Notes under the pieces: generated by a model | Seen by the model: only the letters and a program-made list of their open reading frames with translations | Told to the model about the DNA's origin: nothing | Databases searched by the model: none | Shown: positions 15,675-61,000 of the stretch, in pieces | Position numbering within the stretch: the first letter of the stretch is position 1 | Layout: each line of letters opens with the position of its first letter | NCBI RefSeq assembly: GCF_001194135.2 | Contig: NC_068985.1 | Coordinates: 22,618,379-22,682,378 of the forward strand | DNA: 64,000 nucleotides | DNA from: Octopus bimaculoides | Taxonomy: Eukaryota | Direction: 5' to 3' | Program-made: the position numbers and the translations under genes

Positions 15675-18600
15675 TTAATCTAGTTGTGCCATTGACAATT
15701 TAGGAATTTCTGCTACTTCCATGAAAACTCTGGAAAATAAAAATATAATATATATAATAAAACAATATATATATATAAATTACTACAAACACACAAATCC
15801 TAAAAATATTGCACACAAAATCTTTAAAATTTTCTAATCAAAAAGTATCTTTCATAGGCACAGGCACGCTTGTGTGGTAAGAAGCTTGCTCCCAACCACA
15901 TGGTTCCAAGTTCAGCTCCATGCATGGCACATTGTGCAGCTGTCTTCTACTAAAGCCTCAGGCTGACCAAAACCTTGTGAGCGGATTTGGTAGATAGATA
16001 CTGAAATATCTCTCTCTCCCTCTCTGTGCGCGTGCATGCGTGCGTGTGACTCCACTGCTTGACAACTGATGGTGTGTTTGTGTCCCTGCAACTTAGCGGT
16101 TCAGCAAAGAGCAATAGAATAAGTACTAGGCTTAAAATAACTCCTGGAGTCGATTTGTTCAACTAAAACCCTTCAAGGCAGTGCCCCAGCATGGCCACAA
16201 TCAAATGACAGAAACAAGTAAAAGATAAAAACAGTCAGAGAGATTACATTATTACATGCTCAAAACTATCCTCATTTACATTCCAATAGGAACAAGAGTC
16301 ATTACTTCATTTATTAGGTTGTGTGAGTGACAAAGTAGCATTTGTAACTGTATTTCAGAGTCCCAAGCAGTTCCAGTTTTTTTGTCAGTAATTATGGCCT
16401 TACATCAAAAAGATATACAATAGGCTTCAGCAAGTTTCAGTTTGTGGAAATTCACTAAAAATCTGAGTGAATATATGAAGATGGAAACTGGCGGACAGAA
16501 GGCAAGTAATGGTAATAATGGAATTTAAGTAGATGGAAACTCAGTAATGATCAACATGATGCTATGCTAAAAGTTACTTATCCAAAGTGCCATGCAGTGT
16601 ATTTGAATCCAAAATACTGAGCCACACAGCCAAGCCAACTACCAGTTAAAAAATATATGTTAGAGTCACAATAAAATGTACCCTGTTGTCATCATAATTT
16701 GGTGTGTGTATTCCATGCTGGCATGCACTGGATGGTTTAGCAGGACTGCATCAAGCTCTAGCTTTGGCTTGGTTTCTGCAGGTGGATGCCTTTCCTAATG
16801 CCAGCCACCTTACAGTATGTATTAGGTGTTTTTTAGTGTCACTGGCACTAGTGAAATCAAGTAATTTGAAAGACAAGAGAAGGAAAAGGCCCCTCGACTG
16901 TGGGACTGTATGAGAGAGGGGGTGGTGGGTATATTTGATAGAGGAATGCACATGTTGCAAGGATAAAGTATGATAGAGGAACAAACACAGGTGTTTTGCT
17001 AGATGAGTTACATCATAAAAGAGTAGGTGTTGAGTCACTGGAAAAACTGAAATGGTGGTCATGATTTGTCAGAAATTAGGGAAAGGGAGGCAGCAATAGA
17101 AACTATGCCAAAAACAAACTGTACAAACAGGATATGGACTTGGAAAACTGCATTGCAAGCTACCTGTCCAGGAAGACAGTACACTGAATAAGAAAAGATT
17201 GAGTAGAAAGAATGATCTAACCACAAACATTCTCGTGTGCCAGTAGCATGGTAAAATGCCCCCAGTCTATAGTAAGACCTGCACTAAGTTGGCTGGTTTT
17301 CTGTGTTGTCGTTGCTGTGAGTCAAATGACAGATTATGTTAACCCTTTCGTTACCACATTTCTAACCAAATTACACCCCTTATGTGTTTCAATTAATTTT
17401 TAACATAATCATAAATCTAGGGTGGTTTCATTAAACAACTTTAACTTTTTTATTTATCAACATATTAATGTGATTTTTGGAAGATAATTTAACAAAAGGT
17501 TCTCAACCAATTCTATACCAAAATTTTTGTCACAAAGTGACTTTAATTACAGGTAAATTCAACAAAATATAAAATTATTAAAATTTTTGTTCAAACATCG
17601 CTATAGAAAATGGGTTATTAGCTAATATTCAATTGGGTATACAACAAAATATTATTATAGAAGAGTTGTGCACATTACTGGATTCATTACTGTCTCTTTT
17701 GCCAGTATAAAATTAAAATCCAGAGCAGTACCCAGTATTTGATTCACAAATCTTTTCCAAACTTTGATCCCCCGTTTTGTGGGCTTTCCTGGCATATACT
17801 GTCGAAAACGCACTCGGCCTTTATAGCCCACCATATCCTCATCTATAAACTGTTTTATATGTGCTTTGAACACAGTCAATGAGGGGTCTTATTTTAAATA
17901 AGGGATCAAAGTCTGGTTTTCTACGTACTGGTGTACTGCTTGTGTCTCTTACATGTAGATATTGAGTCAATTTTAAAAACCGTATCCTCGTCATTATACT
18001 TGAGACATATTAGTCTCCAAAGGGTTCATCACTACTCCAGTAATTTGTTATTCGAGGTAACTTTCTAATGCCCATAATAATATTTACGGCAAAATATGCT
18101 TTAATTTCATTCAAGTTTATGGGAAACCACAAACTATCCTTTTTTACGCTTTGTTTATGCCGTAATCAATTCAAATAGGTACTTCGGAAAAAGCAAAAAG
18201 AAATAGTCTAAAGCTTTACTCTCCTGGGTAAGACTGTGACTTGGTCCAGTTTCTTCAGAAAAATCACTGAAAAAAGGAGTTTTTAAATTTTCACTCCATT
18301 CAGGTACTAATTCATTCTCTTTATCGCTATCATCGGAGCTCTCGGATTCACTGCTTTCATTTTCGGAAAATGAAAACTCAGATTCATTATCAAATACNNN
18401 NNNNNNNNNNNNNNNNNNNNNNNNNNNNNNNNNNNNNNNNNNNNNNNNNNNNNNNNNNNNNNNNNNNNNNCCACGTGCTTTTTTTTTTTTTTTTTCGGTT
18501 ACAGAGTTAGATTTATCAAGGTCTTCAACGGAAAATCCTTCGAATTCTGACTCGATGCTTGACAGAATAAAATTCGTATCCATTTTTTTGTCAGGATTAC

Positions 18601-27600: not shown

Positions 27601-29795
27601 CATCAGTCCTAGTGAGGTTGCTATGCAGCTTGCAAGACTGAAGTCTGAGAGGGTGGCTTTATGCTAAGAGACGAGAGGTAAAAATATGAGAAAGGGCCTA
27701 AATAAGAACAGGTTTCCTGCTGTAGAGGAGCTACATGACTACTCATATTTTAGAACAGAGGATGGGAGAGAGTAGTGATAAAAACAAGTATTGAGATGAC
27801 AGAGTGGACCTTCAAGGTAAGAAGTGGGTAGAAGTGAGAGGGATCAGTAGCAGGTGGATGAATGTTACAGCTGAATAGTAAGAGAATCTGAGATGGTGAA
27901 TGGATGAAGAAGGGGAAGTAGGCAATCACTAGCAATGTAAGAATTAGAAGGGGAGGAGGAGATGACTGACAGTACAGAACAGCAGAATTATGATGATACA
28001 GCAGATAGGAGAAGGATGACAGGATGTTAGGTAGGTTGCAGGTGTAAGCAGGGAAGAGGTAGGCATAGTGCATGAAGGCGAGGAAGGAGCGAATACTAAT
28101 GGATGAAGGATGGGAAGCAAGTGAATTGGTTCTAGGTAGTAAGAAAGTGCTATCAGGGAAGAATAGCGATTAGTGAGGGTGTGGATGTGTATCCTCATGA
28201 GCCTTTGCACAGACATGGGCAACAGTGACAGTTCTTTCCCACAGCTCAATAGTTTGATATGCAAAGACAAATGCTGACATCAAGAAGGGTAACTGATCAA
28301 ATACAACCTCAAGTCTCATCCAAACCATGACAGTTTGAAAAGAAAAAACATAAGGATTTGGGTTGACAAAAAAAAAGAAGAAAAAAAAAAGAAAAAGAGT
28401 AGGAAAAAAACCCATTTAATGTCCATTTGCCATGCTGGTATGCAGACAGAAACATCTCTCCAGATCACTGCAGGGGTCGTTAAACCAACAAGGGAGTTCT
28501 CAACTTGTTGGACATAGCAGCTTTACACATTATCTAGATGTATAAAAAGGCAAGATTTGTGATGACTAGAATGACCTTTGAACATACTTCTGGCCAACCA
28601 GCTCATTTTTATTTGGCCAATAAAAAGCTGGATTCAATAAATGTTAATAAGAAGAACTTACATTATAACTGGAGAAGATTCTGGGTTATCTCGAGCCAAG
28701 TCAATTGGTTGTAATGCCTTGGTAAGTTCTTCAATTTGGGGTTCTTCTTGCTTTGGGTTGCATTTTGGCTTCAAAACGATTGTAGATCTTGTTATTTTAG
28801 TTACACCTTGTTTTTTAACTGGCAGTTTGCTTTCCTTTTCTATTATTTTCGTATTCTTCTTTTTCTGCAGGGGTAGAAAAAGTGAAAATGTAATTGTCCA
28901 TTATAACAATTCATGTGTATTCATTAATTATTAAATAAATTGTCGGTGCATTCTCTCTTACATTGGTAATATCGCCAAATACAGCTCTTCGTTTCTGGTC
29001 TGGTCCTTGGGTGACTTCAGTCTTAGAACGGGTGCGTTTCAGGGGACCTAAATTATCAGCAACGCAATGAATCTAAAATTAAAATAAAGAAAACTTAGAA
29101 GAAATTTTCAAAATGCAGACGAACAAAGTTTTAACTACAGCATAAAGATGTTCGAAGGGCAATCCTTCGGTATTCGTAGACGACATCTTTCACCCACACG
29201 TTACCTCATGACAATAAAGAGGCTAGGCTTAAAAAGACGGATTGCTGTTCGAAGTCGAATGATTTGAGTCGGGGCCAAATATTAAAATTAACATTTAGTT
29301 ACAGGAATACATTCGCGAGATGGCATTTAAAACATCCGAATTTCAGCTGAGACAAAAATTAAAGATAAAATGTATAAGCTATTGAATAAACAGGAAATTA
29401 TGCAACCAATGAGAGACTAATTTAGCAATTCAGAAAAGAATATTTTTTAAAACGTTTTCATTCAAAGGAAGATAATGAACTTGCAACGGTCAAGAAAAAA
29501 AGAAAAAAAGGAAAACAAAAAAAAAGAAAAAACTATATTTGTAATAGCGGCTTGAAATTAAATATTAACCAATGAATATTAACATCATATAAACCAAAAA
29601 TAATTTCAACTGAAATGAATAAAAAGAAAATATAATAAAGCTTTAGATAAGCAGTTGCAAATTCGACATAGAGTATATGTGAATGCTTTCGGGTATATAA
29701 ATAATATTTACCTTTACAGGAGCTTCGTTTTTAGATCGAAGAGAAGGCCCTTTGGTTAGAGGAACTATATCTCTTTTGAATTTGCGAGTGGCCAT
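15675..29795 (-). CDS. CCNB3: G2/mitotic-specific cyclin B3, 420 aa, 10 coding exons
   Basis: join (minus): 29795-29712, 29072-28962, 28864-28662, 24216-24171, 22206-22111, 20561-20328, 19638-19483, 19392-19246, 19158-19028, 15729-15675. All introns GT-AG, phases consistent, 1263 nt open. Cyclin box MRTILMDWLVEVQTNFELHHETLYLAVKLVD; FLYMCDNAY; PLSYRFLRRY; RxxF-type D-box RAVFGDITN characteristic of B3. An extra N-terminal exon cannot be excluded. Confidence 0.92.
15858..16225 (+). mobile_element. tRNA-derived SINE
   Basis: A/B-box-like head (tgtgtggtaag...ggttccaagttc) followed by family body. Related pieces at about 9500-9670, 30385-30760 and 48090-48210. Confidence 0.65.
17343..18863 (-). 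mobile_element. piggyBac deletion derivative in the last intron of cyclin B3
   Basis: TTAA at 17339-17342 and 18864-18867; 14-bp TIR CCCTTTCGTTACCA. Acidic N-terminus plus ALDYFFLLFP (ORF 18155-18583) and IDEDMVGYKGRVRFRQYMPGKPTKRGIKVW (17655-17879). The remainder of the transposase is missing. Confidence 0.9.
18398..18470. other. Assembly gap (73 N)
   Basis: Run of n. Confidence 1.
24960..25255 (-). mobile_element. RTE-like LINE 3' fragment
   Basis: ACIKTAILNGSKTW...LERNEASMLHWMYNV...LREKLGIRGI. A related decayed piece lies on the plus strand at about 47340-47560. Confidence 0.7.
25254..25620 (+). mobile_element. tRNA-derived SINE, near full length
   Basis: A box TGGCCCAGTGG, B-box-like GTTTCGATTTC, core ttgagcgaagacac, (caa)n tail. 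Relatives at about 31610-31885, 32405-32560, 34478-34710 and 42640-42770. Confidence 0.75.
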
Positions 29796-29879
29796 ATCTC
29801 AGGTATGAACGGAATAAAATATATCAAATGTAAATACAACGATACACACGAACAGCAAGTAAACTGTTTATAAACTGAG

Positions 29880-29935
29880 GAAACTGGACCGTTTGAATTT
29901 CGTACGTTTATTTCCTGCTTGCTGATTGGTTCAGT
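29880..29935 (-). promoter_or_regulatory. Cyclin B3 core promoter candidate: CCAAT box (29925-29929) and CHR-like TTTGAA (29892-29897)
   Basis: Motifs lie about 100-130 bp upstream of the ATG in a CpG-containing patch. CCAAT plus CHR is the known architecture of vertebrate G2/M promoters. Confidence 0.45.
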
Positions 29936-32281
29936 TCCCCCCACCATCACTTAAATATGTTAAGGGACATAACTCAGTCTTCCTATTCCTAACGTAGTTT
30001 CGATTCTTTGAAACCACTGTTTTTATGTCACTTATTTCTTTTTTTAAAAATGCACGAACGTTACACACTCTTTTATTTTAAATCCTATTTTTAAAAAAAT
30101 CATGCTAATTTTCGCAGGTTTCTTAAATCACTCACAGACTCACTCTTGCCCACAATCGTGCTTGTCCCTTCTCTTTACCCCATTGATTGGTATTAAATCA
30201 CTCGCAAACATATCCCTGCCTTGGCCTACCAGTATGCTCTCTCTCCTCCTCCTCTCTCCCTTTTTATCACTCCCAGCTAGCTACCTCCGCTTATCATCCT
30301 TATCCTGTTCAATCACATAGGCACCGCACTTCCCAGAACGACGAGCCACTGGAATCTTTCTTATGTTTTCTATTTTTTACGTTTCAGTCATTTCACTACG
30401 GCCATGCTGGGGCACCGCTTCAAAGGGTTTAGTCGCACAAATCGACAATAGTACTATTTTTTTAGTGTAATACTTATTGTATCGGTGTCTTTTGCTAAAC
30501 CGCTAGGTCACGGGGATGTAAACAAACCAACACCTGCTGTCAAGCGGTGGTGGGCACGGACAAACACAAAGATACTCGCATGCGCACACACATATATATA
30601 TACAGATATACAACAGGCTTCCACACATTTTCCGTCTACCAAGTTCACCCACAAGGCATTGGTTGGCTCGGGGCTATAGTAGAAGACATTTGCCAAAGAT
30701 GCCGCGCAGTAGAACTGATCCGAAACTATGTGGTTGCGCACACCCATACTTGTGCCTAAAACTAATGATTTCAATCACTGTGTCTGGTTTGTGAAACCGA
30801 AAAGATCCGTTGTTCACTTAAAACAGGTTAAAACGGAAGATTAACAGCATCGTGCTCGCTGGCCTCGGAGAGCCTGGAAAAGTCATGGATACCGCCCCTT
30901 CCTCAAGACTGAGCAATTAAAAATAAAACGTCAAAAATAAAAGCCTATTTCACATTGCTGCTAATGATCTTAGGAAACACACGCAGCAGAACACTAAATT
31001 TCTCTTACCTTACAAATCTCAAATATTTCATACATGTATATAAAGAATTTCTTTTGCAATTTTTACGTTTGACATTCTAATGCATAAAACAACTAAAGGA
31101 TTTTGGGGAGGGTCACGAACCAACTAAAGAATCTGCTAAAGATAGTAGCCAAATCTCCTTCATATCACAACCAACAGTCATAAAAAGGAAGGATACTGGA
31201 TAAGTTGGTTAGATTGTCTTTGATCGTAAGTCTGCTTAACATTCCCTTAAATCACATCTTAATGTACTGAGAGAAAAAAGAAAGATGAATGCATTGGATT
31301 ATGTACTTCTTGTTAAGCTATCTTGCAAAAAAAAAAAAAAAAAAAAAAAAAAAAGGAACGGTCGCGGCCAGATTGCTTTTAATCATATATACACTTAATC
31401 AGGGCTGACATAAAGTTAATGTAATTATCTCCGAACCTGCTAATTACTAACATATTACATGCACCACCAGGTTTCTCTGGCTATTGTAAATATACTGTTT
31501 ACTGCGAGAAACAAATTCAGATTCATTTGAAACTTAATAGTGTATTTAACAAAACTTTCCTAGGTGGTCGATGTTCACCTCCGATTTCAATGACGATAAG
31601 TACGTAAGCATCCCCTGGACCGGTGGTCAGAGCGTTGGGCTTACAATCATAAGATTATAAGTTCGATTCCCTGCCGAGCTGTTTGTTGTGTTCTTGAGCA
31701 AGACGCTTTATTTCACGTTGCTCCGATTCACTCGGTTACAGAAATGAGTTGCGACTTTACTGGTGCTTTTGCCTTTCCGATGTGGAGAGGGGAGACTAGT
31801 ATGCATGGGCAACTTCCACAAACAACCTTACCTGGACTTGTGCCTCAGAGGGGAACTTTCTAGTTCCGATCTCATTGTCATTTGTGACCGAAAGGGGTAT
31901 TTAAGTACACGAAGTTCCTCGTTCTGTAATGAATTCAGTATTATAAATTCAAACTCTGTCGATGTCAACTTGGCCTTTTATTCTTTCGGGATCAGTAAAA
32001 AAAAACAAAAAGACACTTCAATCTAGGACGGTGATTTTGTGAAAATGAAAGAACAGTTAACCTTGCGGTATTTGTTCTGACCTTTTCATTCCGAGTTCAA
32101 ATCCTGCCACGGCATACTTGGTCGTCCGGTTTATCACTACCATTTGGCACTCTAAGTGCATTTAGCGGAGTCTACTATGTTGAAAGCATTCGAGCGAGAC
32201 CTCTGGTTTCATTATACCTTTCCCCTTCCCTCCCTTCAGTTATGGAGACCCTGTAACAGAGTAATGGGTACTACCTCTCCG

Positions 32282-35388: not shown

Positions 35389-37248
35389 ATGCCTCGCTCT
35401 GTGTCGAAGTTGTTTATTAACTTTCATGGTATCATACGCTCTCTACAGCTAACGTTGAAGTTGTCGCAGCTTACACTAAACATGGACTGGGGTTATAGTG
35501 ATACAGATACTTCTTCAACGAACAATCCTTCTTCCCGTGATGAATGCCTTACTATGTCTCCGTCACTGTCTTCAGAAATGTCAGCAAGTGATTCTGACCC
35601 TCCTCCGAAAACTGATATTTCTCCTCCCGAATCAATACAAGAAACAAAGTCGAAACTTAAGTCGCGCATTCTTCCTAAATCTTTATTGGACTCAGTGACA
35701 GAAAAAATTCGCGATGGAATTGTTCCTCAGGCTGACATTGTAAAGAGTCCTTGTAATTTCAACGATAACTTTTGTATTGGAGAGGAACATCAATTAACTA
35801 ATACAACTTGTTTTCTGGAAGACGAAACTGTTTCTCTAACTTTTTGCCCTAAAACTTTTATTGATAAACAAGAGGCAGAAAACATAACGGTTGTTCCTGA
35901 GGGTGAAGTCTTGACATCTTCGGAGTGCAATGACAGTGTTACGAAACAGACAGTTATCGATGAAGAAAGTGGAACATTAACTTTTAATAATTTAAGTGAT
36001 GAGAATTCGATTTTAACCGTGTTTAGTGATGAAGAAACACGAACGAAAAAGCAAAATAAAAATTCGTTCAAACAAATTCCAAATTATTTTATTTCAATCC
36101 AGTTTTCTGATACAGAAATTAATACAAATTTAAAAGATGTACAGAAATCTGTTATGAAAAAAAATGGAAATTATTCCTTGGCAGTTGTACCGCTTCATAG
36201 TCTTCACATGACGCTTGCTGTGATGCATTTAGGGGGAGACGACGATATAGACCGGGCCAGAGCAGCATTAGATCGGTCTGGAGTTAAACTGACACCAAAA
36301 TATGAAAAGGAGATGTTAAAGCTTCCTTTACAAGGTCTGGGAAACTTTAGAAATTCAGTAGTTTTTGCTAAAGTCCAGCCAGGAGACCATGTTGCAAAGT
36401 TGGAAGAAATTGCTGAAGAAATTCAAGCGCAATTCTTTGCAGAAGGGTTAGTTGGAAAACAATCAAATTTCACGCCTCATGTTACGGTGATGAAGTTATC
36501 GAGGGTTGGAAAAAAATTAACTAAAAAGACAGGATTGAAAAAGATTTATCCTGACGTTTATGATGAATTTATCGACAGTTATTTTGGCTGCCAGCCTGTA
36601 GGTAGTATACAACTCTGCTCAATGTTAAAACAAAAAGGCATCTCTGGTTATTACCATATAGAGCATGAAATATATTTTGGTACTAGTTCTAAAAATGGAA
36701 CTAAAAATAGCAACGCTGCTCCAGAATCGGTTAGTGAAAATCAAATGAAGTTGGGTTCAACCTCAAAACCTTCACCTGACAATGAATGTGAAAAAGCTAC
36801 TGATATATCAGAGAAAACTAATTCAACTTCCGATGAAGCAGTCAACCATGCGGATGAAATGAACTCGTCATCAACTTCAACTCTGAAGCCCGATTCGTCC
36901 CATTCTGTTATAGGATCTCAGTCACAATTAGATACAGAATCAACATGTCCTGCAGAAATAGTAACTGTTATAGAACCACTGGTTGTTGCAGAAATCAGTC
37001 CTATATCTGTGAGTGAACCTCGCAGTCCTTGTAAAAGTTTCGTTGATGTTATTGAAGAAGGTTTGGAACTAGCCGAAGAGGCAATAGAGTATGTTAATAA
37101 GGGTTCATCTTTACCTCGTGCCTCTTCACCGAGTGAATCGCTTCCAAATCCAGATCCACATGAAACAAATATTCAAATTTCAGGTAATGAAGGAAGTTCT
37201 CCTCTTACTAAAAAATTAAAAAAGACACCGAATTGCAACATTATGTAA
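35389..37248 (+). CDS. AKAP7: AKAP7-like 2H phosphoesterase (2',5'-phosphodiesterase-like), intronless ORF, 619 aa (588 aa from the better-context ATG at 35482)
   Basis: Domain at 36079-36681 follows AKAP7 gamma/delta: PNYFISI, HMT (36205-36213), LQGLGNF, FTPHVTVMKLS (HVT 36478-36486), LCSMLKQKGISGYYH. Flanks are acidic and low-complexity. Orthology versus paralogy not established. Confidence 0.85.
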   Translation: MPRSVSKLFINFHGIIRSLQLTLKLSQLTLNMDWGYSDTDTSSTNNPSSRDECLTMSPSLSSEMSASDSDPPPKTDISPPESIQETKSKLKSRILPKSLLDSVTEKIRDGIVPQADIVKSPCNFNDNFCIGEEHQLTNTTCFLEDETVSLTFCPKTFIDKQEAENITVVPEGEVLTSSECNDSVTKQTVIDEESGTLTFNNLSDENSILTVFSDEETRTKKQNKNSFKQIPNYFISIQFSDTEINTNLKDVQKSVMKKNGNYSLAVVPLHSLHMTLAVMHLGGDDDIDRARAALDRSGVKLTPKYEKEMLKLPLQGLGNFRNSVVFAKVQPGDHVAKLEEIAEEIQAQFFAEGLVGKQSNFTPHVTVMKLSRVGKKLTKKTGLKKIYPDVYDEFIDSYFGCQPVGSIQLCSMLKQKGISGYYHIEHEIYFGTSSKNGTKNSNAAPESVSENQMKLGSTSKPSPDNECEKATDISEKTNSTSDEAVNHADEMNSSSTSTLKPDSSHSVIGSQSQLDTESTCPAEIVTVIEPLVVAEISPISVSEPRSPCKSFVDVIEEGLELAEEAIEYVNKGSSLPRASSPSESLPNPDPHETNIQISGNEGSSPLTKKLKKTPNCNIM

Positions 37249-37757
37249 AATGTTTATAGTTGCAATAGAAAGTATAAATATTAAGATCATAAGATATTAT
37301 TTCAGGACTTTGAAAAATCATCTGTCATTTGTCATTTTTGCACATGGTTTTGTTTTGCAGTTTCTTTTCTTAAAGTTTTTAGTTTGGTGTAAATATATAA
37401 AATTATGAGTTGTTAACAAATTGTGATCGAATTACATGATTACAAAATTTAGGAAGTGCCTTGATTAATGCTTTTTTGTTATTTATAAATAAAATCCCTG
37501 GCCCCTCTCCCTCTTTTTTTTTTTAAATTTAAAATTAAATTTTAAGGAAAATCTATTTTACTGTCATTAGGTAATAAAATAAAACCAAAAGAACTTGACA
37601 TAAAACAACTTCGAAATGTTTTGTAAATTGTCATCTTTTAAACACTTTGGCAGTCTGTCTCTGGAAAGATAATGAATGACTATATAAATGTGATCTTATT
37701 GCACTTTCTTTTTAATACGCTTAGATTTTTTAAAATTTTTTTGTAGATAGTACTTCA

Positions 37758-37827
<70 letters not shown>

Positions 37828-42625: not shown

Positions 42626-44881
42626 GGGAAACGATCCGTGGATTGTCCCAGAGCATGATACTTTTATTTCACATTGCTCCAGACCACTCAGCTGGCAAAA
42701 AGGAGTTGTACTTGTAATTCAGAGCGATGTTGAATCTTCCAGAGAACTACGTTAAGGGTACGTGTGTCTACAAAATTTTCTTAGATGCTATAGTTGATTC
42801 CATAAGTATGCTTTTCAATCAGCCCATTTAATGTACATACAATTTGTCTATCTTTGTACATCCTCCACATTCATTATCTGTTTTGCAACCATGCATTACA
42901 TAATGTGCCTTTCACTGAAAAAGAGGCTCTCTAAAGTAATACCTACCTCAATTTAGTCACCCTGTTATACTTTGGCTGTCAACTTCTAGGCATTTGAAGG
43001 TACTCATTGCTAATTAAATCTGTGTATACAAAATCTTTCTACCAGCCAGTCGTAATAAACCAACTTTATTCCGTAGGCTTTGCTTCTATATTCGGAATTT
43101 GCTCCTAATTAACTGAGTTGTCTGACTTTCTGTAGAATTGCACCCAGACCAACAAATTTCTGGCCTATAATGACGACTACTACCTCATTCCTTGGACTAC
43201 ATGATCAAAAACTTTGCAAGAGATTCAATTTCAGCCATAAAAAAATCTTTACTAGGTTGTTTAACTGCTAATCAGCCCTATGATCTAAGTTATTTCCAGC
43301 TGTGATGTATAGGTTAAGAATCAAATTATTGTCTAATTAGATTTTGTACATAATTACTCCTTCTCTCAAGATACCTGCCTATAATAATAGAAGCATGTAA
43401 CTAAACTATTTTACCTCCCCTGTCATTTTCATCTGGTTAAGTGCTTTGTTCTCATCTCTGGTAACACATCCGAATGCTATTCTCTTCTCAGTCAGATTTG
43501 ATTGTGAACCATAAATGGCCTCAAACTCAAGCAATCATAAAATCTAAAGCCACAGCACTGCTATCTGCTCAGATTTAAAACTGTCTCACATATACCTTTT
43601 GTAGACTGGCACACTTTTGTGCTGTATCTTCCAGAAATATCTTTTCTTTCAAAGCATAATGAACTTCAGAACTTCTTAGCTGTAATCCATGTAACATATA
43701 TGAAAATCTGGTTGGAATGTAATAAACAGCAATGTGCAATATAACAATTTCTGTTCATAATTCTTGGTAAAGAAAAACACCAGAACTTCTTGGTACTTTT
43801 TTCTCATAATACGTGTCCCTCCCTCCTGCATTCCCATCAGATCTTAACAATTGACGTTCTCTCCCCTGTACTTAACTATTCTATTGATGTTCTTAAGTCT
43901 TTAACAGTTTTCTGTCTCCAATTGATTCAATGAACTGTCCCATAAACTGCAATTGGTGTGCAACAGAGGTACTTGCTACTCTCTTGCAGATGTCATTTCT
44001 AACCAGCAAATATGGTCATTGAAGAGGAAACAGTCATGTTTTAAGCATGCAGATACATGCTCCCTCCAAGAATGCTATACCCAATTATATCTTTCTGGGA
44101 AATCTTACATATTTGTTTGAAAAAAAAAAAAAAAAAAAAAACCCCGGGGCCTACTCCAGCTCTAGACATCCATAGAGTTTCCTGCAAATCACCTCTACAA
44201 TAGTCTTGCAAGCACCTTAGATATTCATTTGTGATGTAGAGACAGTATCAAGCTCTTGTTGGAAACAGTAGGAATAATTAAATAAGCATACAAAATAGTG
44301 TACTTGCCAGGAAATTGAACAAACCCAAGTCGTATACTAAATGTACAAACGTTCAAGAGACTATTCTACTGGTCAGAAAAACTTTTTGTTCTAATAAACA
44401 AATCGTGATTATTAAATGAAATTTATTCTTAAATTGCAGTACTCATCTAGTCATGATAGTAAATCCATGCTTTACTTTGGCAAAGCATATACATCTATTA
44501 AGAAACTTTTACCAAATTATTTCCGACTCCCAACATACAAAATTCACTTCACAATGTCTCACTCTAAAGCTATATTATAACAGATGAATCTTTGTATTTG
44601 AGAAACAATACTTCTGCTCTTCAGAATGAATCCTTACCAGAAAGGTATAAGCCTCTCTGGTTACTATTGAAACATCTATTTCCATTGATGATTAAATGAC
44701 ATAAGTAACAAAAGGTATGAACTACATTTAGGAAGTCCTAACATAATCATTTGCATGTGGTTGTTGAAATAACAATGAATACACCAAATAATTCACGAAT
44801 GAAATTTGGTGCTTCAGAAATTGAGCACAACATAAAATATAGTAGGAATAACTTCAGAAAAATACAGATACCAGGAACAAC

Positions 44882-44887
44882 TTTATT
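44882..44887 (-). terminator. RPS24 polyadenylation signal AATAAA
   Basis: About 45 nt after the stop codon in the terminal exon. Confidence 0.75.
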
Positions 44888-44932
44888 CCACAGTAAAAAC
44901 AGATATCAAACAGATGCCCGGGATCATTCTCC

Positions 44933-47900
44933 TCACTAGAAAGAAAAAAGAAAAAGAAAAATTAGAAAATCATTTAAGCACGAACTACAGTTTAAATTCA
45001 CAATGAATTTCAAAATGAAGTGTATATGTACACACACATCAGCAAACGATGTTAGTAAAAAGAACCCAGTGGTAATACAAAGTTATCAAAAAAAAAAAAA
45101 AAAAAAAAAAAGTCAACACTTCAAACAGGAAATGGTTTGCATGCTATAGTAATCATATAACAATTTAAGTCTTTTAAATCTATTTTACTGATATAACTAA
45201 TATTGTAATTCTAAAAACAAATTAACAACAGGAACTTTAACAGAACACTCAATTTCACATCAATTTACCTAACTGTTAAACACAAAATCTCAATGTTACA
45301 TAAAGTGGGATGATTTAAGCCGACGGCATTCTCACACCCACTCGAAGTCGAGGTTCATACTTGTTGCAGTATGGATACCAGCAACCCTCCTTTTAATGAA
45401 CTCATTATAAACTGACTTTTATAGTTATAAAATCTCTAAACTACTTTCAATATGTGCAGTAGCACTTTTACCACAAAACCAACGTTACTGAGTATATTTT
45501 ATGGCAAAAAAATATACTCAGGAGATTAGTTTTAATTCAAAACAAAAACAAGGTGTATGAGAGCAGGTGATCAGAAAGCAGACTATTTGTGATTTTCAAT
45601 GCCTACAATAACCGTCACGCACTCTCTGAATTAAATGTTAAGTTACATACAGAATATGGCAAATTGACAAACAGTGACTAACACTAATTTCACCTTTCAT
45701 TTCAGAGTACAAATTATGATGTGTGTATTAATAAGTTTTTTAAAACTTTGCTCTGAAGATAATTTTGGGTTAACTACTTTAGTAAAGTTAAACCCCCAAA
45801 TTTTCAAAGCAAGAGGAACTATATTTACAAACAACATAATGGTACATGGCAAAAAGTGTACTGTCAGTCATATTTTGTATGTAACATGCAAAAAAAGGGA
45901 ACACACAACAATACAAACCTTTTCATGTCTGTACAAAAATAATCTATACAAATTTCTGAAAAGACTTGAAAATTGGCCTATATAATCCAAAATGAATGAA
46001 ACGGCATTAATATTTTATGGTGAATTACAACGACCAAAGTGCTGGAGTAGTAATTATGAATACATACAACTGCCATTGTACTGTTCCTTTAGGCAATGTA
46101 TGTTTATGTCTCAACACATGCAGCTGTGTAAATTAACCAACCCATACTTTTAGGTTGAGGGGTTAAAGGTAAGAAAATTGCTAACAGAACTGCAAAAAAA
46201 TATGCTCCAGCATTATGCCTGAAATTCCCAGACCATCATGCCTAAGTTAGCATGGATAAACGGAAGTACAACAGTTAAAAATTTAAACGAATATTTACAG
46301 ACATGAAAAAGTTAATGCGTAAAATAAACTATTCTAAAAAGGTAGACTGGTGCTAGGAGGTAATTAAGAATAATTTAGATGAACAAGGAAAACATCAGTT
46401 CAAAAGTGGAGCACAACATTCAGGAAACACTGGTGGCATCAACATTAAAACGAAGATATATCAACCATCTTACCAGATATAGAAATAGTAGAATCTTATT
46501 TTTTCTAAAAATGAAACAAAATATTTCATGATGTAAAACATACCAAAATACAGGAAATACAGCATTATCTACATCACTACTTTAAATGGGAAAGCAGAGT
46601 ATTGATAAATAGAAAATTACAGAATGAACAACAACAGCCGTCTTGGAAGAAGCACCGCTCACAAAGAATACTGAAAGCAGACTTTGCCGCATTTACAGCA
46701 AAAACACAAAAAACCTTACCTTTTTGCCAGCACCAATTTTGGTTTTAGCCACACCCCGTACTTTCTTTTGCCTATTCTTTCTTTCTTTTCTCTGTTTGCG
46801 GCTTATCTTTCCTTTCTCATAGAGACCATGCTAAAAGAAAAACAAAAATCATTCTCATGTTTTCGTTTTCTTCTACATCTTAAATCTATTTTATCAATTT
46901 TTACATTATCCAATTCAATATTAAACAACATTTATTTTTTTTTCAATTTACAAAGCTTTAGCTAAATGTTGATTCAAAATACACATTTAAAATTCAGGGA
47001 AAGAAAAATACATACCCTTGCTAATCTGTGTTTAGGCTCAAATTTCTTTGCAAAATCTAATGTGTCATATATCATAGCAAACCCCGTACTTCTTCCACCG
47101 CCAAATTGTGTCCGGAAACCAAAGCAGAAAATCAGATCTGGTGTAGTTTTGTATTTAGATGCTAATTTTTCACGGATCTCTGTCTTAGGTACAGTAGCCC
47201 GTCCAGGATGTATGACATCTACCACCTATTTGAAGAAAAATAAAAAATGTAATTCTTTATCATTTCAAGAGAGCATCAACAGACTAGCACAGCATGACAC
47301 ACCTAATTTTCAGACAACAATGCCTGGAAATTTGAGATAGAAAATACCAGGGAGATGTTTTCACAGGAAGTGTGCAAGAGTTGGAAGGAAATGATGTGAC
47401 CATTCCTTGCTGGATAAGTAATGTGTAAAAAATGAACTGAGGGAAAAATTAGATATGAAGAATCAGAAGTAGTGTAAGAGAAGACTATGCCTGCACAGTA
47501 TGGAGGATGCCAGTCATGTAAAAAGGTGTAGAACACCTTAAAGATTACACAGAACTGAAATTTGTGAGGAAGTGATGTGCTGGAAAAGATTCGCCCAACA
47601 TATCTGTGCAGGAACGGCAAAAATTGATGACAATGAGCTATGGGATGCAGAATATCCACATTTGTATCTTTCCTTAATATTCAGTCTTAGTCTTCTTAAT
47701 ATTCTACTGACTTTGTAGCTACCTCACAACTATCACCATATTTATTCCCATCAAACCATCCATGTAAAGAAGGAAAGTATAATTTTGATCTGCCTATATC
47801 AAATCCCAATTCTTTATTGTTAGCCACTACTCACTGCTTCCCCTACTACATGCCACTATCCAATCTCCTTAAAATATTTACCGAACATTGTTCCATCATT

Positions 47901-50900
47901 ATATTCTCTTCCACTGCTCGCCTCTATTTGCCAGGGATCAGCATGGCAACACAGATGTAAAATGATGAAATATATTGAACTGGCTAATCCAAAACCAACT
48001 CATAAGAAATAACCATATCACAACATTTGTGAACTGAGTAGATGAAGCAGTTTTATGTCACTATTCTCTACATCAATGCCATAAGATTAAGAAATATTAT
48101 GAAGTGAAACTAGTTACACAGTTCCATGCATAAGAGCCTCCTACTATAGGTTCAATCCAACCAAAGCCTTGTAAGTGAAACTTAAGAGACAGGAACTATG
48201 TTGAAGCTCATTGTGAAGACTGTTCCTCATTCTGAGAGTGCATGGATGCCATAAACAGAAGCCAGTCTGATGCAAGCATCCTAGCTGGTTTCCCTGGTCT
48301 GAGAACAATACCCAGTCAACAGAATGGTGAAATGAAAAACCAAGTGCTGTTTACAGAACCATCATGATTGAAAAGTAGAAGACATCCTTCTGGCAAGGTA
48401 CCAAAAGGATCAGTTGCAATTTTGTGAGGCAAAAGAGGCACAGAGCTAGTTTTTGGGATGATGGTCCCACATGGTTGTAATGTTGGGTAGCAACCACCCA
48501 TCCAGCTTATGGGGATGTATGATTTGCTTAAAGCATTGCTCTCTGCCAGAGTGAAGCACATAAAGAACTGTTAATATTGACGAAACAGAGCACATATCTA
48601 TCAGCCCAGTTACAAAAAACAAAAATCAAGTAAAAAAACAATGTTATTTGTCACGACATTCTCGGAACCACTGAAGAATAAAATCAAAAGCAGCTCGATT
48701 TATATGAAGTAATTAATGTAGCTATTATGAACAAGATCCACATAATATCTTAAAAAAGACCATGTGGGGTGAAATAGCATTTGACAGAGCCGTAAGAATA
48801 ACTCAAACAATTTTGCTGTCAATATAATTGAAAACAGTTGGAAGACTTTCATCACCCACTTGTATATAATCCATAAGCATGTTTTTCCTACAAGTATAGC
48901 TTCTGAGTACCTTCATCCAATTAGAGACACATGAAAGAGAGTAAAATCAGCTCAGCAGGAATTAAGTTTATTAGAGAAATGATGTTTGCAGCCATATGTT
49001 AGTGCTGTAAATGGCACACTGGATATAAGGGCAAAAGCAACATAACTCATTTTCCCAGAAAGCCCAGCAAAGTATCATTTGAAGAAAAACAATTTACTAA
49101 ATACAGAAATAAAAACAAGAAAAAAATTTTCAATAACACAATCAGGAACAATGACAAAACACCCCATATCTGTATGCAGATATGCTTGTACAACATTGTG
49201 TGAACAAAGCAACTGTAATTTATGTAATTGTTTTAAAAACCCAACACCAACCGAGTCTGATTAAAGAAAACAAAGTCATGTAACAACAGTTGCGAAACCA
49301 CAAGGACAAACATACCAAATGGTTCGATTAGATGAAGTAATTTTATGTAGCTATTGTATATATATATCAATGCCACAATATGAAATAAAACATACCGTGG
49401 AGTAAAAATAGCAATTTATAATGTAGGGATTTAGGAGATTTCATGAGCAACCAGACATGTGTACCATCACTTTACAAAGACATGCTAGTTTTAAGGTATA
49501 CATTTATGTTAGTATTGTAAAAGGCACACTGGATATAATTCACAAGCAACATAACTCATTTTCCCCAGAGAGAGAAAAAATAAACACAATCAGGAACAAT
49601 GACAAAGCAACAGTAATTTATTGTAGTTGTTTAAAAAACCCAACACCAACCCAATCTGATTAAAGAAAAAGTAAAATCATGTAACAACAGTTGCGAAACC
49701 ACTAGGATAAACATTCCAAGAGGTTCGATTAGATGAAGTAATTTTATGTTGCTATTGTATACNNNNNNNNNNNNNNNNNNNNNNNNNNNNNNNNNNNNNN
49801 NNNNNNNNNNNNNNNNNNNNNNNNNNNNNNNNNNNNNNNNNNNNNNNNNNNNNNNNNNNNNNNNNNNNNNNNNNNNNNNNNNNNNNNNNNNNNNNNNNNN
49901 NNNNNNNNNNNNNNNNNNNNNNNNNNNNNNNNNNNNNNNNNNNNNNNNNNNNNNNNNNNNNNNNNNNNNNNNNNNNNNNNNNNNNNNNNNNNNNNNNNNN
50001 NNNNNNNNNNNNNNNNNNNNNNNNNNNNNNNNNNNNNNNNNNNNNNNNNNNNNNNNNNNNNNNNNNNNNNNNNNNNNNNNNNNNNNNNNNNNNNNNNNNN
50101 NNNNNNNNNNNNNNNNNNNNNNNNNNNNNNNNNNNNNNNNNNNNNNNNNNNNNNNNNNNNNNNNNNNNNNNNNNNNNNNNNNNNNNNNNNNNNNNNNNNN
50201 NNNNNNNNNNNNNNNNNNNNNNNNNNNNNNNNNNNNNNNNNNNNNNNNNNNNNNNNNNNNNNNNNNNNNNNNNNNNNNNNNNNNNNNNNNNNNNNNNNNN
50301 NNNNNNNNNNNNNNNNNNNNNNNNNNNNNNNNNNNNNNNNNNNNNNNNNNNNNNNNNNNNNNNNNNNNNNNNNNNNNNNNNNNNNNNNNNNNNNNNNNNN
50401 NNNNNNNNNNNNNNAATAAAACATACCGTGGAGTAAAAATAGCAATTTATAATGTAGGGATTTAGGAGATTTCATGAGCAACCAGACATGTGTACCATCA
50501 CTTTACAAAGACATGCTAGTTTTAAGGTATACATTTATGTTAGTATTGTAAAAGGCACACTGGATATAATTCACAAGCAACATAACTCATTTTCCCCAGA
50601 GAGAGAAAAAATAAACACAATCAGGAACAATGACAAAGCAACAGTAATTTATTGTAGTTGTTTAAAAAACCCAACACCAACCCAATCTGATTAAAGAAAA
50701 AGTAAAATCATGTAACAACAGTTGCGAAACCACTAGGATAAACATTCCAAGAGGTTCGATTAGATGAAGTAATTTTATGTTGCTATTGTATACACCGATG
50801 CCACACTCAGCCATAAGATTAAGACATAGAGTGGAATGAAAATAGCAGTTTATAATATATATATACACACACAAAATTTCATGAAAAAGTAGACGAGTAC

Positions 50901-58024: not shown

Positions 58025-61000
58025 ATGATGAGTCATGGGACCTCCCCTAAAAAGCTAAAACAATGTACGCTTGATGATCTATTCAATAAAAGATCAACAC
58101 CTGGACACAAAGGTATGTGTAATTGTCAATCATTTAAATTTCCTAGTTATTTCCTTATTTTGGCAAGGATATTGAAGCATTGAACTAGGATCATTGATGT
58201 ATCCAGTTCAGTGATTTTGGTTTAAAATTAAACACTATGAATTTTGCTCGATCATCATACTTGAGTTGATATCCGTTACAAAACAGACTTTGTATTCTGT
58301 AAAAAATTATGTTTATCCCTTGATTACCTCCATAATGTTGGTTTCTTTAATATTTGTGGTGACTGGAGTCAGTACTAACATTTGTATGAAGCTGAATTCA
58401 TAAAGTTGTAATATTTTTGCTTTTCCTTGTTTAAATGTTCCCCACTCTTCAGATTTCATGGATGTCAGAGATGTGAAGGTTACTAAGAAGCTTCATTCCT
58501 TCTACTTCTCAGCCATGATAATTCTGTAAGAAGTATTGCTGTTGAGAAAGCTCCTACATTTGCTGCCTGCTTTGCCTCCTGCACACACTTGGTAAATCTT
58601 AAATCTCCTTCAGAACTATCCCTCTTCATTCCACCAGGTTCGCCATATTCACCTCTGTGAAAGCACGTCTAGTTGCTTCAAACCGACAAGGAAGTGAGCC
58701 CTGACAATGTCCCCTCTTTCACTCTCAAATAATCTACCCTAGAACTTGCCAAATTCTTCAAACTTTCTGTCTGTCTGTCTCTCTCTCTCTCTCTCCCTCC
58801 AAAAACCTACCATAGTCTTTGTAAATCCACTTCAGTGCATGCCGTTCCCAAAAGAGCAACTCCTTTGACCCTTCCAGCTACTGCCCAATCACTTTCAATC
58901 AGCTTTGAGATGTTAGAAGTGAGACAGTCATTAACAACCACCTTCTCCATCACCTTGAAAATCTCTCCCTTTTCAATAACTCCTCTTAATTTTGTTTTGT
59001 TCCATGGAATTTCCATGGGTCACATTAGTTACTAATATTTGCATATTTATTGTAACTGTGTGGTGAGAGAGAAACAGATGAGACTGATGATGTTATTTAT
59101 TACTTCCTTATGGAAAAAATAAAGTTTAGGGAGAATTATATCAATAAATAAGATTTATAAAAAAGGAAGTATATTGCAATTTCTAGTGTATATGTAACAC
59201 TATTTTATACTTAATTTTAACTGAAGAGACTAGGGTGTAATTTATACATGAGGCAAAACTGGTATCAAATTTGAATATGAAGGGAAATAATATTGCATCA
59301 AGATTTGACACCAAATTTTAAGTGCTACTTAAAATTGAGAAAATACAGTAGTTTTTAATCTCAAAATATATCAGAAGTGAAGTGAAAAATATTTTCAGTT
59401 TAGCTAATAAAAATAAATAAAAATAATAGCATTACTAGGATAATCTGTAATTTTCAATTTGATAGTTATGTACAAACATTCATTGAGATGTTTCTAATGG
59501 ATATTGTATTGAATATCTCTCATACATTTTGAAATATATATATTCATATATTTTTGACTTCATAGCTACAATGCAAGATTCCTTCAAACGTGATGATAAA
59601 GATCTAAAAGTTACTGATTCTCAACCAATTCTGGATAATAAATTATCAGAAAGTGATGACTTGTTGGGAGAAAAGAGGTAATTCCTTTACTATTCCATTT
59701 ATTTTTCTCATTCTTTTTTTCTTCTTTTATTTAAAGATTTATATAACTTCTATGCGTTTATTCTTGTATGTTGGTTTGAGTTTATGGAAAAATGTCTAGG
59801 AACTGATTACAACTGTTTCTTTAGTAGTTAGCTTCCATGAGAATTAAGAGTCTCTTTTACAGTAAGAATCATTTAAGGATATATTCCCTACTTATCTCTG
59901 CTATTTGGCTGATCTCAATCCAAGTGGCACAATTGTTGTTTTGGACAATGACTTCTGCTCCAGTGTTAAGGAATGTTAGCTCTGTCTTGGCAAACTATTA
60001 GGTTGGCAACTAAGTTCCTGCCGTTTTTTTAAATTTAAATTTTTTAAAAGGTTTAATAAAAAATAACAACTAATTAATCAATAATGTATTCACCCTTGTT
60101 GTTTACAACTTCTTCTCAACGTTCAACAAGTTGGTAGAAATCCCCCGATTTTGACTCGAAAAATTGATTCAACCAAGCTCTCAAATCTGTATCAGTATTG
60201 AATGAAACTCCGTGCATAGCATTTGAAAGAGATCGAAAGAGGTGAAAATCCATTGGTGCCAAATCAGGAGAGTACAGCGAGTGTGGCAGCACTTCCCAGC
60301 CATGCGTTTGAATGGCTTCCTTGGCCATATTGGCAATATGAGGGCTGGCGTTGTCGTGCAGTAGAAGAACTCCATGCTGTCGATTAGGTCTTTTCTCTTG
60401 AGTTGTTCCATCTGTTGAACACAGATTCCATGTTGACCATTTGGTTCCGTTCAAGCGATTTGTAATGGATAATCCCTTCCCAGTCCCACCATACACACAA
60501 CATTGTTTTACATAGATGAAGATCTTGTTTCACACGCAGTGTCGTTTGTTTACCGGGGCTAAGCCATTCCTTACGCTGCTTCATATTGATGTACAGGCAC
60601 CATTTTTCGTCACCAGTAACGATTCAGTAAAGAAATCGTTGCTTGTGTCCATGAGTTGAGCGGTGACGAGCAAGCAAACCAGCGGAGATTGTGGCTTGTT
60701 GATTTTGTTGGTTGGCATTAGGAAGGGCATCCAGATCAGATTAGAGCCTGGTGCAGCTGCTGGCTCTCCAGACCTCAGTCAAACTGTCCAATCCATGCCA
60801 ACATGGAAAATGGACGTTAAACGATGATGATGAAGATGATGATATTTGTGTGTGCATGTGTATGTCTTTGTGTTTTCTTTCTGCCACTACTTGTGTCAGT
60901 CTGTTTTTGTCCCCAAACTTAGTGGTTCACCAAAAGAGACCAGTAGCATAAGTAACAGGTTTTAAGAAATAGGTGCTGGGGTTGATTTGTTCAGCTAAAA

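Follow-up and report, generated by a model that had tools for sequence, protein, structure and literature searches.

Is an AKAP7-type enzyme, normally nuclear, carried to membranes in octopuses and squids? The question is raised by a stretch of 64,000 nucleotides of the Octopus bimaculoides genome (assembly GCF_001194135.2, contig NC_068985.1, positions 22,618,379 to 22,682,378 of the forward strand; hereafter the window, numbered from its first letter). It carries an open reading frame (ORF) for a 2H phosphoesterase of the AKAP7 type that ends in a basic cluster and a CaaX box (Cys, residues a1 and a2, and a last residue X). The comparisons described below indicate that coleoids probably do tether this enzyme to membranes, because the tail is conserved in octopuses as well as squids and is absent from the other molluscs examined. 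The features on which the argument turns are as follows.

35389 to 37248, plus strand: complete intronless coding sequence (CDS) of an AKAP7-type 2H phosphoesterase, 619 codons and a stop, taken from the ORF list
37210 to 37224, plus strand: basic cluster KKLKK, amino acids (aa) 608-612, a putative electrostatic second membrane signal, with K608, K611 and K612 invariant in six coleoids
37234 to 37245, plus strand: CaaX box C616-N-I-M619, with C616 as the predicted farnesyl acceptor; C616 and M619 are invariant in six coleoids
37246 to 37248, plus strand: stop codon directly after the CaaX box; TAA or TGA stands right after the Met in 6/6 species

The protein encoded by 35389-37248 has a mass of ~68 kDa, and its C-terminus reads ...SPLTKKLKKTPNCNIM and then TAA (also given as ...ISGNEGSSPLTKKLKKTPNCNIM, with TAA directly after). 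A preliminary description of this DNA had placed an ORF end, PLTKKLKKTPN-CNIM-stop, at 37201-37248. These coordinates are exact, the interval comprising precisely the codons from P605 to the stop. The same description had recognized a CaaX box of the farnesyltransferase (FTase) type, with X = Met, beside a basic cluster, and this arrangement, with its aliphatic a2, is indeed of textbook form. FTase prefers Met at X and an aliphatic residue at a2, and boxes of its type carry M/S/Q/A/C at X; in the octopus tail the Cys is four residues from the C-terminus, a2 is aliphatic and X is Met, which makes it an FTase substrate as predicted from sequence only.

We compared the tails of six coleoid orthologue clusters, the window included (four octopods and two decapodiforms).

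Window Octopus: KKLKKTPN-CNIM
O. sinensis: KKLKKTPS-CCIM
Further octopod orthologue: KKSKKTPN-CSIM
Argonauta hians: KRLKKTPN-CSIM
Decapodiform 1: KRRKKMGK-CVLM
Decapodiform 2: KKRRKKIGK-CSVM

The absence of the CaaX box from close orthologues had been named beforehand as the refuting observation; we found the box conserved in 6/6 coleoids, decapodiforms among them. Position a1 is free (N/C/S/S/V/S), a2 is always I/L/V and X is always Met, while the Cys codon itself has undergone a synonymous change, being TGC in octopods and TGT in decapodiforms. All six orthologues carry a K/R cluster 3-8 residues before the CaaX Cys, and P605, K608, K611, K612, C616 and M619 are invariant among them. Octopus-squid identity amounts to 40-47% in the last 15 residues versus 10-19% in the flanking linker. 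The segment before the Cys, SPLTKKLKKTPN, is rich in P/S/T/K, has a predicted local distance difference test (pLDDT) score <50 and no predicted secondary structure, which suits what FTase needs of a substrate. C616 is the only Cys among the final 20 residues of the window protein, and Argonauta has one Cys at -17. This substitution pattern, read from the aligned sequences, is the one expected of an FTase CaaX box rather than of generic conservation, and we regard it as quite likely that the box is functional.

The same alignment bears on a different explanation, namely that the tail is conserved for a role other than prenylation (as a binding motif, a degron, or a redox or metal-binding Cys) and that the protein is soluble. 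Short C-terminal motifs may be kept for protein-protein binding, and the conservation of P605 and of the lysines could be explained by such a motif. However, the constraint carries a signature specific to CaaX boxes: a1 is free, a2 is limited to I/L/V, X is Met, and three residues separate the Cys from the stop in 6/6 species. To our knowledge there is no alternative motif with constraints of this type, and we consider a non-prenylation role to be quite unlikely.

The distribution of the tail outside the coleoids was examined by an exhaustive profile search that gave 1,164 family members, and the findings rest on the best 150 representatives of these. No CaaX ending was found in the nearest relatives outside the cephalopods, which are Lingula anatina AKAP7, the bivalves Sinanodonta, Solemya, Mizuhopecten and two oysters, the gastropods Haliotis and Batillaria, amphioxus, the hemichordate Glandiceps and vertebrate AKAP7. 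Since the AKAP7-type proteins of these outgroups are without the tail, a lineage-specific gain is the best reading, and from the sequences at hand the tail is best read as gained in the cephalopod lineage, no later than the coleoid ancestor. A Cys at -4 is sporadic in the 148 non-cephalopod representatives (3-4 cases), about as often as chance would give (~2% of proteins). The complete motif was seen in two anthozoan-like singletons, P0049 (...RKRKRCMVM) and P0076 (...KSKNLHCDIL). These are the only CaaX tails among 86 anthozoan-branch relatives, the 84 coral relatives having none, and the two are thus either sporadic or derived from unsampled lineages. A domain-only alignment search aimed at more decapodiform orthologues returned just five proteins resembling P0014, a 294-aa intronless AKAP7-like ORF with no CaaX box and no synteny with the window.

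The enzyme to which the tail is attached is defined by three features.

36079 to 36675, plus strand: 2H phosphoesterase domain of the AKAP7/AKAP18 type, aa 231-429 (Pfam PF10469, PDB match, AlphaFold2/Foldseek)
36205 to 36213, plus strand: first catalytic H-x-T motif, H273-M-T275, from the translation
36478 to 36486, plus strand: second catalytic H-x-T motif, H364-V-T366 (CAT GTT ACG)

That the ORF encodes an AKAP7-like 2H phosphodiesterase, as had been proposed, is borne out by the Pfam AKAP7_NLS match (PF10469; E=1.2e-38, 133.5 bits against a cut-off of 24.4), which covers profile positions 1-207 of 208, by the presence of both H-x-T motifs and by a match to the AKAP18 fold. By sequence, the solved structures that come nearest are AKAP18 delta and AKAP7 gamma in their central domains (E ~4e-39, 39-45% identity), and ASCC1 and archaeal LigT-like proteins gave far weaker sequence matches. 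Residues H273, T275, H364 and T366 are unchanged throughout a 62-sequence alignment, where they align with the HIT and HLT of AKAP18. With this alignment AlphaFold2 gave pLDDT >90 over aa 230-430, and the top Foldseek matches of the model were 2vfk, 5jj2 and 2vfy (AKAP18; E ~1e-19, target template modelling (TM) score 0.85-0.90). Another model built from the six coleoid sequences only had a pLDDT of 30 and was kept for secondary-structure hints alone. Going by sequence and model, the window protein is an AKAP7/AKAP18-type 2H phosphoesterase that looks catalytically intact. Membership of the CNPase family was considered and rejected: the protein has no CNPase Pfam match, and no CNPase structure is among the top 50 Foldseek matches. 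By analogy with mammalian AKAP7 and CNPase, candidate substrates would be 2',5'-linked oligoadenylates and 2',3'-cyclic phosphate ends or nucleotides.

Next, we looked at the region just upstream of the domain.

35989 to 36078, plus strand: 30 codons before the 2H domain, from which the K/R cluster of nuclear localization signal (NLS) type is missing in coleoids, by motif count

In mammalian AKAP7 an NLS lies just N-terminal of the 2H domain, and its removal lets the phosphodiesterase work in the cytoplasm (PMC10835031). The pattern K[KR]x[KR] stands no more than 30 aa ahead of the domain in 86 of the 116 non-cephalopod representatives, versus none of the five scoreable coleoids. The K/R count over the same 30 residues is 4-6 in coleoids versus a median of 10 in the other representatives. 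At the sequence level, coleoids have lost the nuclear signal that is usual in this family and gained a C-terminal basic cluster and CaaX box, and this combination fits a relocation away from the nucleoplasm.

The following course of events is proposed. Cytosolic farnesyltransferase would farnesylate Cys616 of the terminal CNIM, after which -NIM would be removed and the new C-terminus methylated at the endoplasmic reticulum (RCE1/ICMT pathway). The neighbouring Lys/Arg cluster would contribute electrostatic affinity for acidic phospholipids, so that the 2H domain would be held, via a long acidic disordered linker, on the cytoplasmic side, at the plasma membrane and/or at negatively charged endomembranes. 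The net effect would be the relocation to membranes of a normally nuclear enzyme whose upstream NLS cluster has been lost. We hold this proposal as a whole, with its plasma-membrane or endomembrane destination, with moderate confidence; the anatomy of the sequence, its conservation, its restriction to one lineage and the fold are shown by the comparisons, and the lipid modification, the membrane and the substrate are inferred.

Several observations weigh against this proposal. The tail comparison covers only six orthologue clusters, all of them coleoid. The octopod tail has only four Lys (in the window 4 Lys and 1 Glu), with a net charge of ~+3 over the last 20 residues, well below K-Ras4B; a signal of the K-Ras4B type would be expected to carry ~+6 or more over the 15-20 residues ahead of the Cys. 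Decapodiform tails, with 7 K/R, reach a net +7. From work with farnesylated charge probes, a charge at the octopod level would predict mixed binding to the plasma membrane and endomembranes, and plasma-membrane specificity is therefore doubtful for octopods. The clusters KKLKK and KRRKK also match the monopartite NLS pattern K-K/R-x-K/R. Finally, a donor-like sequence, CAG|GTAATG, lies at 37181-37189, 60 nt 5' of the stop and within the ISGNE codons, and it is identical in the four octopods.

The donor-like site bears on the simplest alternative, a chance ending or an annotation artefact, in which the tail would be fortuitous or the mRNA would be spliced or terminated before it. The identity of the site in all four octopods speaks for this explanation, as does the ~2% of proteins that have a Cys at -4 by chance, a figure in line with the 3-4 of 148 non-cephalopod cases. 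On the other hand, the site is missing in the decapodiforms, where the tail is nonetheless kept, and its +5 position is T, not G. The motif and the position of the stop have also been preserved between octopods and decapodiforms though the adjoining linker has almost wholly diverged, and the CDS runs on as a single ORF in all genomes examined. We observed that it is collinear and a single uninterrupted exon in O. sinensis, Argonauta and squid genome contigs (3 other cephalopod genomes), so that splicing would not be required to bring the 2H domain and the tail together. The O. sinensis gene LOC115211903 is 93% identical to the window CDS, and its locus shares ~89% nucleotide identity with the window over >10 kb, non-coding flanks included. 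Taking these points together, we judge a chance or artefactual tail to be highly improbable. An octopod isoform without the CaaX tail may exist, as use of the donor-like site at 37181-37189 would take the tail away.

The match to the NLS pattern brings in another alternative: the C-terminal cluster could serve as a replacement NLS and the farnesyl group could anchor the protein at the inner nuclear membrane, as in lamins, so that the enzyme would stay nuclear like mammalian AKAP7 gamma/delta. Besides the matches of KKLK and KRRK to the monopartite pattern, the CSIM ending of two octopods is that of the prelamin A CaaX box. Members of the family are as a rule nuclear, and the N-terminal NLS that they usually carry is absent here (PMC10835031). 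Yet Pfam found only 2H-type domains in the window protein, with no rod, Ig, lamin tail or other lamina-binding feature, and the long acidic linker contains no other nuclear signal. The layout also differs, as a cluster that abuts the CaaX box is the arrangement of small GTPases bound for the plasma membrane or endomembranes, whereas the NLS of lamins is far from the CaaX box. We think nuclear-envelope targeting unlikely, and prefer anchoring at the plasma membrane or endomembranes.

The linker between domain and tail was also analyzed, and contains one conserved element.

36685 to 37200, plus strand: acidic S/T/P/N-rich linker, aa 433-604, predicted disordered (isoelectric point (pI) 4.3, 42% S/T/P/N)
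37039 to 37098, plus strand: conserved acidic amphipathic helix FVDVIEEGLELAEEAIEYVN, aa 551-570, a helix in both AlphaFold2 models

The linker shows many octopus-squid insertions and deletions, has pLDDT <50 except in the helix, and measures ~170 aa in octopus and ~330 aa in squids. In the helix, L559, E560, A562, E563, E564 and A565 are invariant in coleoids (core LE[LV]AEEA) and octopus-squid identity is ~45%, although in one squid it is reduced to ~12 residues between prolines. We considered the helix at 551-570 as a candidate binding site for the RII subunit of protein kinase A (PKA) and rejected this as unproven; it does not have the canonical RII-binding motif, though it may be a non-canonical binder. 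The C-terminal 189 aa gave no match to AKAP7_RIRII (PF10470) or to any other Pfam family at E<=10, and the AKAP consensus regular expression is not conserved: in Octopus it matched only a Pro-containing segment, and in Argonauta and one squid it had no match. In vertebrate, amphioxus and hemichordate relatives the same expression does recover the helix already known there. Because a PKA RII-binding helix was not found, the AKAP label of the coleoid protein is unproven, and from its sequence it is doubtful that it belongs among the AKAPs. NCBI labels the nearest invertebrate relatives (Lingula, oysters) AKAP7 or AKAP7-like; with the PKA-binding helix undetected in the coleoid and other lophotrochozoan proteins examined, the annotation 'A-kinase anchor protein' should be carried over to invertebrate homologues with caution.

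The N-terminus of the protein has two conserved starts.

35389 to 35481, plus strand: 31-aa N-terminal extension from the first start codon (ATG1), basic, amphipathic and mitochondrial-presequence-like, judged from its composition; ATG1 is kept in six coleoids
35482 to 35484, plus strand: start codon of M32, the second one and invariant by the alignment of coleoids, with a strong Kozak context (a at -3, G at +4)

In 6/6 coleoids ATG1 is in frame 31-40 codons before the invariant second Met (MDWGYSD or MEWSSD), and a stop codon lies 2-5 codons above ATG1 in all six. ATG1 sits in a weak context in Octopus (c at -3, C at +4), and all species have a at -3 together with G at +4 around the second start (ATG2). 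The 588-aa product P0001 begins at M32. The extension has a pI of 12, no D/E and a hydrophobic moment (muH) of 0.58, and in these properties it resembles a mitochondrial presequence. The N-terminal arm that follows (aa 32-224) is acidic (pI 4.3) and predicted disordered. Mitochondrial members of the AKAP7_NLS family do exist, since proteins with this domain are components of kinetoplastid mitoribosomes (PDB 7aor, 7ane, 6hiw). The N-terminus of P0115, an AKAP7-type protein from a JGI metagenome contig, is also presequence-like (MLSMHFTRKSLQLSKLVFINR...), and its end, ...NCCYICAIC, is rich in Cys.

How does this architecture compare with known systems? The short AKAP7 isoforms alpha and beta (AKAP15/18) are myristoylated and palmitoylated at the N-terminus and have no 2H domain. 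They share with the coleoid protein that they are membrane-bound products of the AKAP7 family; the coleoid anchor differs in being C-terminal (predicted prenylation) and in retaining the 2H domain. The vertebrate long isoforms, AKAP7/AKAP18 gamma and delta, are like the coleoid protein in their PF10469 domain (39-45% identity, TM 0.85-0.90) and in both H-x-T motifs. They have an N-terminal NLS, a C-terminal RII-binding helix and no CaaX end, whereas in the coleoid protein no NLS is detectable before the domain, a canonical RII helix is lacking, and there are long acidic disordered arms, a basic cluster with CaaX end and an intronless CDS. The vertebrate sequences, which end in the RII-helix region, e.g. 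...VESAVLKAVQQYLEE..., are in line with the preliminary description, where alpha/beta are N-acylated and gamma/delta have no CaaX box.

The description had further called the tail K-Ras4B-like. K-Ras4B ends in a polybasic stretch and a farnesylated CVIM, and the likeness lies in X = Met, in the Lys/Arg cluster before the CaaX box and in the lack of a palmitoylatable Cys nearby. This comparison holds well for the decapodiform tails KRRKKMGKCVLM and KKRRKKIGKCSVM (net +7), which are near K-Ras4B in charge, but is overstated for the octopod tails with their four Lys (~+3). There is no homology between the two proteins, and the cargo differs, being a GTPase domain in K-Ras4B and here an enzyme of 68 kDa with a long acidic linker.

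A parallel in anchoring logic is offered by CNPase, the 2',3'-cyclic nucleotide 3'-phosphodiesterase of vertebrate myelin. Prenylation of its CTII box sends CNP1 to the plasma membrane, and replacing the Cys by Ala abolishes this (PMC3290555; PMC10761555). CNPase also has two in-frame starts, the longer CNP2 being CNP1 plus a 20-aa mitochondrial targeting sequence from the upstream start (PMC3290555, PMC10761555). The coleoid protein likewise combines a 2H domain, a CaaX box and, from its sequence, a conserved upstream start with a presequence-like extension. CNPase differs in that it belongs to another 2H branch, has a PNK-like N-terminal domain and has Ile at X with no adjacent polybasic cluster; the window protein has no PNK-like domain, and its N-terminal 229 aa gave no Pfam match of any kind. 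The resemblance is convergent, not homologous. The idea that this lineage has independently placed a 2H enzyme on membranes thus stands in so far as a lineage-restricted tail is found on an intact AKAP7-type domain, and does not stand as a new concept, as CNPase, prenylated at CTII, is already a membrane-placed 2H enzyme. Novelty is for this reason confined to the AKAP7 branch: a CaaX-tailed 2H enzyme is not a new principle, but its occurrence in this branch appears to be undescribed. We found no description of a prenylated AKAP7-type protein, or of AKAP7 in cephalopods, in the literature searched.

A more far-reaching thought, which we advance only tentatively and hold to be rather doubtful, is that coleoids, by convergence and starting from an AKAP7-type gene, arrived once more at the design of CNPase: an intronless gene with two leaky-scanning products, a long form with a mitochondrial presequence, a short form carried to the plasma membrane or endomembranes by its farnesyl-polybasic tail, and the ancestral NLS discarded. 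If true, this would give a membrane-proximal 2',5'/2',3'-cyclic phosphodiesterase that could act in the neurons or glia of animals without myelin, or as a regulator, placed at membranes, of immune signals made of 2',5'-linked nucleotides. Among known systems, the 2',5'-oligoadenylate synthetase OAS1 p46 is sent to endomembranes by a C-terminal CaaX box (PMC7612834), and the 2H domain of mammalian AKAP7 degrades the OAS1 product (PMC7612834, PMC10835031). OAS1 p46 differs from the coleoid protein in being a nucleotidyltransferase, not a 2H enzyme, and a link of the coleoid protein to an OAS-like pathway is speculation.

The location of a 2H phosphodiesterase decides its possible targets. Mammalian AKAP7 is kept nuclear, and the viral copies act effectively on the cytoplasmic 2-5A pathway only after NLS loss (PMC10835031); the membrane function of CNPase depends on its CaaX box (PMC10761555). 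An exchange of the NLS for a lipid anchor in one lineage would be a natural experiment on this principle, and the coleoid protein would be a second, independent example of a (predicted) prenylated 2H enzyme and a simple, testable candidate for cephalopod biology.

With regard to the history of the gene, the intronless CDS in Octopus, Argonauta and squid raises the possibility that it is an old retrogene. Three contigs from Logan (L003-L005) are collinear with the window over ~5 kb, flanks included, and their first 54 nt diverge at a microsatellite. Segments of the window at ~29678-29976 and 44850-46840 match the flanks of the Argonauta locus, where cyclin and RPS24 genes were called; these sequence matches suggest that the gene order cyclin, AKAP7-type gene, RPS24 is conserved between Octopus and Argonauta.

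In other members of the family we noted hydrophobic, tail-anchor-like C-terminal helices in three representatives: P0143 (AKAP7-like, from the stick insect Bacillus rossius), P0041, which has three tandem 2H domains, and P0016. Judging from these sequences, C-terminal membrane anchoring may recur independently in the AKAP7-type family, and we offer this as a lead only. P0049, one of the two anthozoan-like singletons, is a single-exon AKAP7-type ORF ~2.3 kb from a Mab-21 gene, which has the cGAS/OAS-like nucleotidyltransferase fold (L009, 5001-6311 and 8610-9932).

A few minor features of the window complete the description. Poly(A) hexamers lie 3' of the stop at 37488 and 37573; they are uninformative, because this AT-rich window shows no enrichment of the hexamer. 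A weak fragment resembling a DDE_3 transposase (60119-60496, minus strand; E=0.011) fell under the cut-off. Two assembly gaps (N runs) are inside the ORFs 18155-18583 and 49744-50481, and an (AC)n/(AT)n microsatellite is found at 37760-37824, ~500 nt 3' of the stop codon.

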